Source of the DNA: Macrostomum lignano
Taxonomy: Eukaryota
Direction: 5' to 3'
Length of the DNA stretch: 64,000 bases
Assembly (NCBI GenBank): GCA_002269645.1
Contig: NIVC01002970.1
Span: 62,001 to 126,000, forward strand
Below are positions 42,317 to 48,300 of the stretch, piece by piece. The notes beneath the pieces were generated by a model. The model made no database searches. It saw only the letters and a list, made by a program, of their open reading frames with translations, and had not been told where the DNA came from. The position numbers and the translations under genes are program-made. Numbering within the stretch: position 1 is the stretch's first letter; the number at the start of each line of letters is the position of its first letter.

Positions 42317-45300
42317 ATGAATGTTCTGAGTAAGTTTTCAGATAAATATGTCCTTCGTGGCTTCACATGCTACGAAGTTGGTCACACTTGGTCTGCCAGC
42401 TGCCTTCAGGCATGGAAGGATGTGGGTTTTGCGAGCTACAGAACAGCTTTCAAGATCTACTTTCCATTGTATCTAGTAAGTTTAGCTAAAAAATGTATAT
42501 TTTTCCTAATAATCATTCAAAATAATGATTAAATCATCATAATTAAGGACGATAAAACTATAACTAATAAAAATCTGCAAATTCTCTTTTCAAGTTTACT
42601 GTTGGGTGTTGCCTATGTTTTTTAATCAGAATCATATGTTAACAACTGTTGTTTTAAAATTTAAGCTAGAGCATAGGCCTAGTAGTGTATTTTTGTCAGT
42701 GAGAAATAGTTGTATGATATCAAACAGCCCATCCATTTGATTTCCCCACTTATGAATCTTATAAATATGCCAGAAAATTCCAGTACATAATAAATAGACA
42801 TGAAAAAAGGTTGGCATAAAATATGTACAAAACAATTTGGTAGAAAATTGCATCACAGAGCTGATATATAGCATAGCTGTTGGTGTGCAAAAGACCAAAA
42901 TGTTATAATGAAAGAAAGTCCTTTACTATTGCATCAGAAAAGTCTTTTATTGTCACAATACAAAAAAGGTCCTTTATTGTTGCAAAGCCTTTCTGACGGT
43001 GTAGGACCAAGACTGCCACACACCAATACCGTCACACTTGGGGGAGCTAAGTGAGAAATTTGACTCAATGTGTTATTAGATAGTGCTAGAGAGGAGATAG
43101 TAGGTAAGAGACCATAGTGTAGATCATGTAGTGCACTCGAGAATTTTCCCGCGTGCATTTTCAAAAGTGGCGTGCACCGGCGTGCAATTCGGTAAGTGGC
43201 ATGCATTTGGCGTGCATAATGCACACTACATAAATACACTGGCATGCCTGGCATGCGCCGCGTGCCGCGTGCCTGGCACCTGATGTGGCAAAGCTGCCAA
43301 TGCAATGGTAAGCAGACATAAAATACGTATTATTGTATTTAACTTTTGAAAAAAACTATTGTAAATAAACAGTGTATAAGACTGTTAAATAAATTAATGT
43401 ATGAAAAATACACATTTGTAAAGATATATCATTTCTTTTGTACATCGTTTGTTGCTTTGTTTTACACAATGCAATTTAAAATATGTTTTTTGTCTTCAAT
43501 TTGAATTTTAATTTATTGGCATGCATCAGCGTGCGTTTGCTTGTTGTCGGCGTGCTTTTGGGAATTAGCTTTGGGTCGTTTCTCGCATGCACTTAGCATG
43601 ATCCACACTATGGGTAAGAGAGCTAGTAGGACAAGGCTGCAAAAAAAGAACCTATGAGAGGAATAGCAATGCTAGAATATTGGTAGCTCCCCCTCAATAC
43701 CAGTAGCCAGCAATAGCTATGGTGGTCTTGGTGTATGGCAGTCTTAGTCATGCACCACTTTCTGATAATGCCTAGCATATATATCACAAGTAAATTTGTT
43801 TTTCTGGCTTAAACTTGAAAATATTGTGTAGTTGGTCACTTTTTCTAATATATCATATAATAGATTTGAGATTATTACTATGGGCCCATTTTCAATAATA
43901 ATGATTTATCTTATCTATTCTAAAAACAGTTTTTCTCAAAATTATAAATATAACAATTTTATTTTAATATTGATTTTTTGCTAGTCTACAATGGCATAAT
44001 AACTGCTTAGAAGATTAAATCATAAAATTATAAAGCTGAACTTTAGCCTAAAGAAAGACTAAGAAAGATAGCTGCGCCTTATATTAAACACTTTCCATAG
44101 GGCTTGGTTTTGGCCATAGACAACTAAATATGAATTGGCTAGTTGTTGGCTCAAATTCATACTCTCACTAACCCTAGGTTCTAAAACTGTATATATATGC
44201 AAGAAATTTATTATTATATATTATGCTTTAATTTAAAATATTTGTCTTCAATTTTAGTTGGCAATGTTTCTAAAGAGGAAAAATCAACAGAAGAAATCCA
44301 AGCTCAGTCAAGATCTAAAAAAGATGTTTCCTGAGCTACTTAGGTCAACATTTTTCCTTGGTACAAATGGCTTAACGTTCATTGTCACATTCTGCTTATG
44401 GAGGTAAGTCTTCAAAGTATTTAAAGTACTTTTCAAGAGTTTCAAATGGCAAATACTGCTTGCATTTCATTTTGCATACATGAGCTAGGTTTAATTGCAA
44501 GAAAAGTTGTTATATTAATATAAAATTACCACCATTGCTTCTATAAGTATCTATCATTTACCAAAGCATGATTTTATTCACCTTTCAAATGCAATAGCTA
44601 GTCTTCTATTGATCGATCTAGAGTGTAAATGCATTTTTCAATGCAATATCAATTTATTGACTACTAACAGCTTGCTAGCAGTAATTTGGCAATGATTTTT
44701 TCAGTTTATTATTTATTTTTAAAAGTAATATTTTAACCATAGACTGATATATATTTTATGTAAATCTGGAAAATTGACCCCCAATTTCAGGAAATGCTTT
44801 CCATTCTACTATTTGTATCAAGTGCTCACCTGTGCCCCACCATGCTCAGCGCTATCATTGTCTGTTGAAAGACCAGATCGGTAAATCAATTAGCTTTTGC
44901 TTAATTTTTATTGTGCATGACAGTGTTTTGTTGTGTTTTGATCTGGCTGTTTCCAGCTTACCTTGTTTTCTTCAAGTTGCTGCTGTTTTTACAAACTGCT
45001 GTTTTTACAAACAAAATATAATTTTTTTTGGAGGTCCCATTCCTATCTCCATAGCTTAGCCAGGTCTGAGGTCTCCCTATATCTTAGCCAGGTCTCCCTG
45101 GACTTTAGCCAGATCTCCCTAGATCTTAGCCAGATCTCCCTAGATCTTAGCCAGGTTTCCGTAGATCTTAGCCAGATCTCCCTAGATCTTAGCCACATCT
45201 CCATAGATCTTAGCCAGATCTCCCTAGATCTTGGCCAGATCTCCCTAGATCTTAGCCAGATCTCCCTAGATTTTGGCCAGATCTCCCTAGATCTTAGCCA

Positions 45301-48300
45301 GATCTCTCTAGATTTTAGCCAGATCTCCCTAGATCTTAGCCAGATCTCCCTAGATTTTAGCCAGATCTCCCTAGATCTTAGCCAGATCTCCCTAGATCTT
45401 AGCCAGATCTCCCTAGATCTTAGCCAGATCTCCCTAGATCTTAGCCAGATCTCCCTAGATTTTGGCCAGATCTCCCTAGATTTTAGCCAGATCCCTAGAT
45501 TTTAGCCAGATCTCCCTAGATTTTAGCCAGATCTCCCTAGATCTTAGCCAGATCTCCCTAGATTTTAGCCAGATCTCCCTAGATCTTAGCCAGATCTTCC
45601 TAGATTTTAGCCAGATCTCCCTAGATCTTAGCCAGATCTCCCTAGATCTTAGCCAGATCTCCAGAGATCTTAGCCAGATCTCCCTAGATCTTAGCCAGAT
45701 CTCCAGAGATCTTAGCCAGATCTCCCTAGATCTTAGCCAGATCTCCCTAGATTTTGGCCAGATCTCCAGAGATCTTAGCCAGATCCCTAGATCTTAGCCA
45801 GATCTCTCTAGATTTTAGCCAGATCTCCCTAGATCTTAGCCAGATCTCCCTAGATTTTAGCCAGATCTCCCTAGATCTTAGCCAGATCTCCCTAGATTTT
45901 AGCCAGATCTCCCTAGATCTTAGCCAGATCTCCCTATATTTTAGTCAGATCTCCCTAGATCTTAGCCAGATCTCCCTAGATCTTAGCCAGATCTCCCTAG
46001 ATCTTAGCCAGATCTCCCTAGATTTTAGCCAGATCTCCCTAGATCTTAGCCAGATCTCCCTAGATCTTAGCCAGATCTCCCTAGATTTTAGCCAGATGTC
46101 CCTAGATCTTAGCCAGATCTCCCTATATTTTAGTCAGATCTCCCTAGATCTTAGCCAGATCTCCCTAGATCTTAGCCAGATCTCCCTAGATTTTAGCCAG
46201 ATGTCCCTAGATCTTAGCCAGATCTCCCTATATTTTAGTCAGATCTCCCTAGATCTTAGCCAGATCTCCCTAGATCTTAGCCAGATCTCCCTAGATCTTA
46301 GCCAGGTCTCCCTAGATCTTAGCCAGATCTCCCTAGATCTTAGCTAGATCTCCCTATATTTTAGCCAAATTTACCAAAATTCTGAATAGTTCTTGATAGT
46401 TTTATTTGTTATTTAAATGACACAACCTTTTTTTTTGGATTTTTATACACCGATTTGCACCTAATTATCCAACTTTTCATTACCTTTCTAAACTGCATAT
46501 AACCTAGTAAACTTTTACTAATAACATTTACTCTCTTACAATCATTATCATTATCGCTGACTGACTATCTTTTACTTGAAACTTGCGGCTAATCTACTTT
46601 ATTAGTTTTTTCTTACCTAATTTGACTCTAAATTTACTTCATCAAATTAGCCATTGGAAATGTTTATAGAGGAGTATAATAATTCATTCACAAGAAGGCT
46701 CTGGGCACCCTGACGCAAAGCTTCTCTGCTCTGGCCCTTGTGGAGCTTTACTGAATGCTGTGAAAGAGCCATTTTGAATTTTTTTATACAAGTTATAACA
46801 GAACATCCAGCAGGACTGCACCAGGCTGGTGTGATCCGAAATGCAAGCAGTAATGCCAATCGTATTTGTTTACTGTTCTAGTTCAATTGTTTCAATATTC
46901 TTCCTTGTTATTTCTAGGCGCCTCGTTACTGACAGCCTCACGCTAGTTAACACAGGATTCCTGCCTTCCTTCACCTGCTCAGCAGCGTCCGTGTGCTTTG
47001 AGCGGAAGCCGCGGTAATGCCCGGATAGAAATGCACTGCTCATATGCCAGTAATTTTTTGTGCACTAGCTAGATTTATGCTGATTGGTCCACTGCCGCCG
47101 TGTGCTTACAAAGCAAGTTAGAGAAATAGATAGTCAGATAGATAAATAGATAGATAGATAGATAGATAGATAGATAGATAGTCAGATAGATAAATAGATA
47201 GATAAATAGATAGATAGATAGATAGATAGATAGATAGATAGATAGATAGATAGATAGATAGATAGATAGGTAGATAGATAGATAGATAGATAGATAGATA
47301 GATAGATAGATAGATAGATAGATAGATAGATAGAAAGATAGCTAAATAGATAGAAAGATAGAGAGATGAGAGATAAGATGAGAAAAAAAATATGAGAAAA
47401 AGAGGAGAGAGAGGGAAGAGACAGGAAGAGAGGAGAGACAGGAGAGAAGAGAGGGAGTAAGGAGATGGAGGAGAGGGGGAGAGAGATGAGGAAAAAGAGA
47501 AGAGGAGAGAGGAGGAGACAGACGTGGAGAGAGGAGGAGAGAGAAAGAGAAAGAGCTGATAAGAGACAAACCCTGAGCTTGGCCGGATTGCGATTACGAA
47601 GTTTTAAAGGACCCGAGGGCCGGATAGAGAGGGTTTGAGGGCCGGAGTTTGCCGAGCCCTGACTGATAGATAGATGGGTAGATAAATAGATTATATTGCT
47701 TGATAGATTGATTGGTGATTGGTTGATGATTGAATATTTCACACCCTAAGACCGGTTGAACCGCATGCTAAGCTTTTATGTTTAGACTTCGTCTCTTAGT
47801 TGGTGTTTTAATCATTTTCAGTTCTCAAATTAATAAAGCAAATGTCAAGTAATGCTTCATTTTACTGCTTTTCTGCACCTATCGCAAATGTGCTCCAATT
47901 AATTGCTTATTAGACACGCACTGAACAAAAGAGGCACGGTTGAATGTTGGAGTAACATTACGCAAAATTCAAAAACTTGATTGACAGGTATTGACATCAT
48001 TGAGCATATCATCATTTTCTATTTGTAACTATTGTGTCTATACGAGTATTGTAAAATTCTTTGGCTAATTTGATGAGGTAGATTTTGTAGTTATCTGTTA
48101 ATGAACTACTAATTTCTGCGAGCAGTTCAAAATCCTAATTTCCAAGAAAAATTCATCTTTTTTCACTATTTTTCTTCAGTCGGTCTCTTCTTGCCGTCTA
48201 CATGGCAAACATAGTAAGTTTTCAGTCATTGACATTATGGGTCATAGATAGCTTCAGTCATTGACATTTCAGGTCATAGATAGCTTTAGTCATTGACAGT

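Follow-up and report, generated by a model that had tools for sequence, protein, structure and literature searches.

TMEM135-B, one of two tandem TMEM135 paralogues in the flatworm Macrostomum lignano, contains two versions of its third coding exon, designated 3a and 3b, and these probably represent, in the flatworm, an ancient pair of homologous TMEM135 exons, class a followed by class b, of which a transcript would use one or the other. Both exons lie within a 64,000-nucleotide (nt) stretch of contig NIVC01002970.1 (assembly GCA_002269645.1, forward-strand positions 62,001 to 126,000), here called the window, whose positions are used throughout and equal the position in the NIVC01002970.1 locus (L002) plus 15604. 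A tblastn search with vertebrate TMEM135 placed both paralogues on the + strand of the window, paralogue A at approximately 25605-40683 and paralogue B at 42317-51626. We propose that a tandem exon duplication before the divergence of annelids, molluscs and flatworms would have given rise to class a (90 nt) and class b (90-96 nt), each encoding the end of a long helix, a turn and a hydrophobic helix of about 19 residues together with a family-invariant Glu and a junction Arg, and that each transcript would take a single one of them, thereby yielding proteins that differ only in that helix. Judging from the gene models, 3b would be the major or default form in M. lignano, and 3a would be a minor or regulated form. 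The exons on which the argument turns are the following.

44258-44403, + strand: TMEM135-B exon 2, the constitutive upstream exon, ending in AG before gtaagt, phase 2 (placed by tblastn with model P0001 and by splice sites)
44791-44880, + strand: exon 3a, class-a alternative exon, 90 nt, phase 2-2, K CFPFYYLYQVLTCAPPCSALSLSVERPD (R)
46918-47013, + strand: exon 3b, class-b alternative exon, 96 nt, phase 2-2, the form present in all annotated M. lignano proteins
48180-48213, + strand: TMEM135-B exon 4, the constitutive downstream exon, T CGG TCT ... ATA
26652-26747, + strand: paralogue A exon 3, class b only (18.2 bits with the class-b hidden Markov model, HMM)

Exon 3a is preceded by ...aatttcag and followed by gtaaat, and its frame +1 translation is KCFPFYYLYQVLTCAPPCSALSLSVERPD; exon 3b is preceded by ...atttctag and followed by gtaatg, and translates as RLVTDSLTLVNTGFLPSFTCSAASVCFERKP. 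In either exon the first base is the third base of an Arg codon begun by the AG that ends exon 2, and the terminal CG is joined to the T of exon 4. As 3a and 3b are the only coding exons between exon 2 and exon 4, they occupy the same slot, and the original prediction, made from the DNA letters of the window, had their coordinates, AG/GT sites, phase 2-2, translations and terminal CG all correct. The gene was assembled from exons 42317-42475, 44258-44403, 3a or 3b, 48180-48213, 49485-49550, 49626-49672, 49754-49792, 50352-50526 and 50958-51626, and all four combinations give stop-free, in-frame products, namely 474 amino acids (aa) with 3a only, 476 aa with 3b only, 506 aa with both and 444 aa with neither; the expectation that including both would preserve the frame is thus confirmed. 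The assembled 3b form differs at 7 residues from P0001, the TMEM135-B model carried by a second, approximately 96% identical copy of the locus (L001, contig NIVC01000433.1), and a third genomic copy (L005) was also compared.

Profile analysis separates the two exons into distinct classes. Class-a exons encode 30 aa with the signature GFY..Y..(F/L)CG(I/V)PAC..S.S(I/V)E, and class-b exons encode 30-32 aa (90-96 nt) with the signature F(I/V)PA..AS..AIL.ERKSR; HMMs of the two classes were built without any M. lignano sequence, and in leave-one-out trials members scored 38-65 bits with their own class and -1 to 14 bits with the other. With these models M. lignano 3a obtained 27.2 bits for class a and -0.2 for class b, 3b obtained 2.3 and 18.7 bits, respectively, and exon 3 of paralogue A 5.9 and 18.2 bits. 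A six-frame scan of the 64-kb window with the class-a HMM returned one significant match only, at 44792-44881 (25.1 bits, E 1.3e-6), the next best having E = 1. The mean cross-species score of 3a was 58.2 with other class-a exons and 14.5 with class-b exons, compared with 11 with its own neighbour 3b. Exon 3a aligns without gaps to the class-a exon of oyster (14/30 identical, z = 10), while the likeness of 3b to exon 3 of paralogue A, originally counted as 15/31, amounts to 16/32 when the junction Arg is included (z = 18 versus shuffles). The direct similarity of 3a to 3b is not significant alone (8 identities, z = 1.1), and their homology is therefore established through the family and not by comparison of the two exons with each other. 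At this level, by family profiles and Pfam, the proposal that they are homologous alternatives for one TMEM135 slot was borne out, each exon restoring some 32-38 bits of the PF15982 profile across the same profile region and both keeping the invariant Glu and Arg.

The original prediction had also described 3a as a far more diverged copy. That it is stop-free with intact splice sites was right, but 3a belongs to an ancient class a and is about as diverged from its own class as 3b is from class b (27.2 versus 18.7 bits), and is a member of a distinct class, not a badly diverged copy of 3b. A recent duplication within paralogue B, with one copy decaying, had to be abandoned, as class a is common to annelids, molluscs and M. 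lignano. In paralogue A no class-a exon was found by the six-frame class-a scan of the window or by tblastn, and by the same profile evidence paralogue A is the copy that lost the class-a exon, paralogue B having kept the old pair. In the GC-richer island upstream of 3b a short frame at 46721-46771 (LLCSGPCGALLNAVKEP) is similar to the latter half of 3a (tblastn E 0.03); it was considered as a relic of a third exon and rejected, since the class-a HMM gives no match there, and either decay of an extra copy or chance may account for it.

The same pair is found in other animals: class-a exons occur in annelids and molluscs, and that of Owenia is likewise 90 nt long and phase 2-2. The TMEM135 isoforms of Owenia fusiformis are identical except for KVVGFYFFGNVLLCGVPATALAYMIERKDR in one set versus RLIGHFNFLTVTFIPALTASLAAILLERKSR in the other, an exclusive a/b swap in the annotation (CAH1798579.1 versus CAH1798581.1; P0014 versus P0009), and isoforms X2 and X1 of Littorina saxatilis (XP_070190113.1 versus XP_070190111.1; P0042 versus P0188) are likewise identical bar the a/b swap. 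The genomic DNA of Owenia has exon 2 followed by class a (90 nt), class b (93 nt) and then exon 4, with all phases 2-2. In Capitella teleta an HMM scan of KB303020.1 (L004) predicted an unannotated class-a exon at 4869-4958 (KIFRYYFFLNVFACAIPSGCLAISIERKHR, 36.7 bits), which was confirmed by its AG/GT borders, its length of 90 nt and its position approximately 410 nt upstream of the annotated class-b exon. Further cases came from an exhaustive HMMER search (672 family representatives) and name look-ups: a class-a type is present in Physella and Elysia, and protein models of Dreissena and Paralvinella, which are short and look like ab initio predictions, contain class a and then class b in tandem. 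Isoform X1 of oyster contains both versions of the segment in succession, KLAGFYSSYCTFLCGIPACAMSVSVERSDR and then KLLGRFFYSTTGFVAAASASLTAILLERKSR, and isoform X2 only the first; for oyster, Littorina, Ptychodera, Dreissena and Paralvinella the exon order rests on protein models as opposed to genomic DNA. In every spiralian examined, a-a and b-b similarity across species exceeds a-b similarity within a species (58.2 versus 11 for M. lignano), which places the duplication before the split of annelids, molluscs and flatworms.

Outside the spiralians the picture is less uniform. In amphioxus (Branchiostoma) the only difference between the TMEM135 RefSeq isoforms X1 and X2 is exon 3, of which both versions are 90 nt long and phase 2-2; one version leans towards class a (22.2 versus 11.3 bits) and the other towards class b (19.8 versus 9.3 bits). 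In the amphioxus genome (CM027643.1, L006 approximately 2999-3261) the b-like exon comes first and is separated from the a-like one by an intron of just about 83 nt, a length that could enforce exclusivity sterically. The similarity of the two amphioxus exons to each other (46) equals the cross-species a-a similarity (45.6), so that independent duplication and shared ancestry are equally likely. By profile the exons of crinoids and hemichordates lean towards class a, and those of the vertebrate proteins sampled are class b. Elsewhere in the gene, isoforms X1 and X2 of the brittle star Amphiura filiformis (P0192/P0051) are distinguished solely by a stretch of about 44 residues in the exon-2 region, for which each has a homologous version; this suggests a second, independent pair of alternative homologous exons in TMEM135.

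At the protein level the swap appears to preserve the domain in which it occurs. The TMEM135_C_rich N-terminal domain (PF15982; the homologues carry PF15982 together with PF02466) is recognized at 120-127 bits against a cut-off of 27, with 120.2 bits for the form with 3a only, 126.6 for 3b only and 123.4 for both, the last split into two stretches, and the score falls to 88.5 when neither exon is present. Structure predictions of the two isoforms with AlphaFold reached pLDDT values of 88.5 (3a form) and 89.1 (3b form), with 84-98 locally, and gave both the same local fold, consisting of the end of helix 66-104, a turn, a helix from 109/111 to 127 and a further helix from 130/132. A Foldseek comparison with PDB structures produced no full-length match for TMEM135-B and weak domain-level matches to Tim23/Tim17 (8e1m, probability 0.87-0.93, TM-score 0.53), the latter being in agreement with the Tim17 Pfam matches of the homologues. 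According to these models either exon alone gives a good TMEM135 N-terminal domain, and the pair exchanges one hydrophobic helix and the preceding turn in the N-terminal, Tim17-like half of the protein, in keeping with the swappable hydrophobic segment of the N-terminal domain that had been postulated. Inclusion of both exons would add a membrane helix and should invert the downstream part of the protein.

How one exon might be chosen over the other was approached by way of the known mechanisms of enforcement. Steric hindrance was rejected with a 3a-3b intron of 2,037 nt, U2/U12 incompatibility with sites that are all of the GT-AG U2 type (donors GTAAGT, GTAAAT and GTAATG), frame-shift followed by nonsense-mediated decay with exon lengths of 90 and 96 nt, both multiples of 3, and a distant branch point with an AG 37 nt upstream of 3b and no long AG-free zone. 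As intron length, site type and frame do not enforce exclusivity, exon choice must be regulated. An ungapped complementarity scan and short-window duplex predictions, applied to the non-repetitive parts of the introns, yielded the candidate elements listed below, to which the tandem array of the 3a-3b intron is added; duplex folding of whole introns gave long, unrealistic, interrupted duplexes and no clear signal.

44447-44478, + strand: candidate intron-2 dock, located at +44 to +75 relative to the donor of exon 2, with core TACTGCTTGCATTTC (44454-44468) plus TGGCA (44447-44451)
44673-44689, + strand: weak candidate selector A, -118 to -102 from 3a, sharing TGC(T/A)AGCAGTAAT with selector B; suggestive only
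45072-46367, + strand: 21-nt tandem array in the 3a-3b intron, unit TCTCCCTAGATCTTAGCCAGA x 61.9 with 91% matches (Tandem Repeats Finder), in the window found only here
46630-46659, + strand: X2, upstream arm of an inverted repeat bracketing 3b, with two substitutions in the other copies
46828-46858, + strand: candidate selector B, -90 to -60 from 3b, GAAATGCAAGCAGTA plus TGCCA, complementary to the dock and identical in the three copies
48056-48085, + strand: Y2, the 3' partner of X2 on the far side of 3b, at -124 to -95 relative to exon 4 and unchanged in L001 and L005

The core of the candidate dock (44454-44468, 51-65 nt into intron 2) is a perfect 15-nt complement of 46838-46852, which lies 66-80 nt upstream of 3b, and the match is extended by TGGCA/TGCCA; none of 500 dinucleotide shuffles reached 15 nt. 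The predicted dock-selector B duplex (-35.9 kcal/mol, z -5.2) was the best among 155 intronic 50-nt windows, the dock is identical in L001 and L005, and the dock/selector B pair is unique in the window. Formation of this duplex would loop out 3a, along with the array, and bring 3b near exon 2. Positions 46630-46653 of X2 pair with 48062-48085 of Y2 over 24/24 positions, 2 of them G-U, with a score of 52 against a null of 29.4 +/- 3.8 and a duplex z of -8.8; this pair is also unique in the window, both substitutions in X2 keep the pairing as G-U, and the duplex would loop out 3b. The linear order is dock, X2, selector B, Y2, from which it follows that the two duplexes cross and should compete. 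The motif common to selectors A and B is a prediction of the duplication model of Ivanov and Pervouchine (PMC6071210). Inverted repeats inside single intron segments were limited to weak AT-rich pairs, and a scan of 44300-48300 found no Rfam family at threshold, which indicates that no intronic small nucleolar RNA or microRNA explains the conserved islands. Directly 3' of 3b (47014-47063) there is a third selector-like motif, GAAATGCA...GCCAGTAAT, which is the second-best predicted partner of the dock (-24.1 kcal/mol).

Several observations weigh against an alternative use of 3a and 3b. Every M. lignano protein model (P0001, P0003 and P0005) contains 3b only, and the 3a peptide occurs in no protein of a 5.8-billion-sequence collection, as judged by a word-index search whose query included 3a and which returned mostly short vertebrate isoforms. 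On its own class 3a scores below all other class-a members (27 bits versus 38-65), and, as paralogue A shows, this lineage tolerates losing class a. In a flank-conservation test the identical runs flanking 3a and 3b were no longer than those around constitutive exons. The comparison of 3a among the genomic copies has limited power, L001 and L005 being nearly identical around 3a and the copies amounting to about two independent ones. Oyster X1, by holding both exons, makes exclusivity less than universal in the annotations, and the 66-sequence alignment supplied to AlphaFold is mostly class b in the swapped segment. On the RNA side, pairing of selector A with the dock (44673-44686, 12/14, -20.4 kcal/mol, p = 0.033) is weak, as is therefore the 3a side of the proposed switch, and a scan of Capitella for an analogous dock and selector gave none that was convincing, the best candidates having z 4.7 and 2.2 and being mismatched.

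Some of these points would be explained if 3a, though ancient, had recently fallen silent in M. lignano, with only 3b being spliced and decay not yet begun for lack of time. The models that use only 3b, the missing peptide, the loss of class a from paralogue A and the low class-a score of 3a would all fit such a history, as would the modest polypyrimidine tract of 3a (10/20). A search of proteins with the class-a profile also gave no match from M. lignano or any other flatworm; NCBI, however, provides one model per M. lignano gene, and an absent isoform therefore says little. Other features speak for an exon still under constraint. Its frame and AG/GT sites are intact, as are Glu128 and Arg132, the two positions of the segment at which none of 66 homologues varies. 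The acceptor and donor of 3a do not fall outside the range set by the constitutive exons of the gene and are no weaker than those of exons 5 and 6, whose acceptors are equally weak. In addition, 3a is identical at 90/90 positions in the window copy, L001 and L005, compared with 20 variable sites in 527 aligned columns (3.8%), plus indels, in the flanking intron, and by our own arithmetic the chance of 0 changes in 90 nt at the intron rate is approximately 0.03, the coding exons of the gene varying by about 1%. On balance we consider recent silencing rather unlikely.

Inclusion of both exons, or of 3b as a cassette added after 3a, would provide an extra helix and no swap. The frame is kept, a 2,037-nt intron with U2-type sites and exon lengths in multiples of 3 permits it, and models from oyster (X1), Dreissena and Paralvinella hold both exons; those of Dreissena and Paralvinella are, however, short and ab initio-looking, the isoforms of Owenia and Littorina are strictly one or the other, and the M. 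lignano models omit 3a, so that double inclusion is not constitutive there. With Pfam breaking the double form into two stretches and the additional membrane helix expected to invert the downstream part, this explanation is very unlikely. We hold in similarly low regard the suggestion that the AGATCT-rich array sets exon choice through its own RNA structure. The array was described correctly as a 1.3-kb, AGATCT-rich element between the exons (45072-46367, with 93/101 of the AGATCT sites of the window), and the predicted fold of a 300-nt sample of it (-96.6 kcal/mol) is much more stable than those of shuffles (z -6.1), but any tandem repeat that carries a palindrome folds well and there is no Rfam match in the region scanned. 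Furthermore, the three copies of the locus, otherwise 96% identical, differ in the length of the array (1.30, 2.04 and 1.81 kb), and neither Owenia nor Capitella, which share the exon pair, has it; on these grounds the proposed influence on exon choice was not upheld; the array is probably a variable minisatellite inside the loop and a bystander, which may have a modulating effect on splicing. An origin of 3a by accident, as an open frame that happens to have splice-like sites, would accord with its non-significant similarity to 3b, but it is the sole class-a match in the window, which rules this candidate out, and its length, phase and position match the class-a exons of Owenia and Capitella, so that we give this explanation next to no credence.

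A pair of old homologous exons used in alternation thus remains our preferred explanation for 3a and 3b. A bolder version of it, in which the pair is ancestral to bilaterians, the amphioxus pair is orthologous in spite of its inverted order, class a was lost in vertebrates and in paralogue A, the M. lignano switch consists of the two crossing RNA duplexes, and the helix toggle changes the partner or organelle specificity of TMEM135, is unlikely to hold in all its parts.

Other features of the locus were noted in passing. The intron between 3b and exon 4 contains a (GATA)n microsatellite of 62.8 copies together with GA-rich repeats (47126-47555), and in intron 4 (48210-49414) BLAST self-offsets suggest a tandem repeat with a period of approximately 32 nt whose copy number varies between copies. 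The sole TMEM135 model annotated on NIVC01002970.1, P0002 (BOX15_Mlig022125g1), fuses the N-terminal exons of paralogue A to the last exon of B and does not translate exactly from the contig DNA, and paralogue B is without a model of its own on this contig. Over their initial 420 nt or so (40027-40446 in A and 50958-51377 in B) the last exons of the two paralogues are identical at 414/420 positions, compared with about 68% in the remainder and 116/159 in exon 1, a pattern suggestive of gene conversion between the two neighbours. Upstream of the TMEM135 pair, in a GC-rich part of the window, lies a Frizzled-type receptor gene (approximately 17888-19861; 657 aa, Pfam Fz and Frizzled).

TMEM135 is a poorly understood Tim17-like membrane protein with links to the dynamics of peroxisomes and mitochondria, to lipid handling and to ageing. 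A helix swap kept for hundreds of millions of years would mark the helix concerned as functionally important and would offer two natural variants of it for comparison. The class-a exon is missing from several annotations, being unannotated in Capitella and left out of the M. lignano models, which have class b alone, and paralogue A with class b only represents a natural case of a trade-off between gene duplication and alternative splicing. M. lignano has been described as amenable to transgenesis (PMC5173321), which makes both the candidate RNA switch and the functions of the isoforms directly testable.

No paper describing mutually exclusive or duplicated exons of TMEM135 at the exon-3 position was found, and the one TMEM135 candidate in a genome-wide survey of human mutually exclusive exons (PMC5740500 supplement), intronic and unconfirmed, is situated at the exon encoding VLLFCITAAMYMFFFR, which corresponds to exon 6 here and not to exon 3. 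The original prediction knew of no such case in TMEM135; in annotation the isoforms of Owenia and Littorina are recorded. The pair is previously undescribed, though its isoforms exist in the RefSeq/ENA annotations of a few invertebrates, and ancient tandem-duplicated alternative exons are as a kind well known.

The closest relatives of the M. lignano pair are those of Owenia and Littorina, which share with it the gene family, the slot, the two classes, a class a of 30 aa and isoforms that differ only by the swap; they differ in that both forms are annotated there, whereas M. lignano has only class b annotated and carries two paralogues of the gene, one of which retains class b alone. The Branchiostoma isoforms X1 and X2 are similar in that the swap is confined to an exon 3 of 90 nt and phase 2-2, and different in their b-a order and their intron of about 83 nt. 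As regards mechanism, in ATE1 exons 7a/7b (PMC7797038), Dscam1 and 14-3-3zeta competing intronic base pairing loops out one exon, the dock adjoining a constitutive exon and the selector preceding the variable one, a layout which the candidate elements of TMEM135-B would reproduce; in M. lignano, by contrast, the pairings are computational only, the 3a selector is weak and there is no cross-species covariation. A general evolutionary model has selector and dock sequences arising with exon duplication (PMC6071210), and the M. lignano selectors resemble each other as would be expected had they been duplicated along with the exons. Exons 5a/5b of the sodium-channel SCN-alpha genes (PMC12772994) and substitutions by tandem duplicated exons in human genes (PMC9741552) are, like the TMEM135 pair, ancient duplications in which a membrane segment is swapped and the fold is kept, and they too have unannotated copies in distant species; the protein is of course another one, and in TMEM135 class a is apparently absent from the vertebrate proteins sampled. 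The fate of homologous exons after gene duplication (PMC4494069) provides a final parallel, since in M. lignano paralogue A keeps one version and paralogue B, by its genomic sequence, both; subfunctionalisation is at most a possibility in this case, and the division of the two versions between the paralogues is the point at which the two systems agree.

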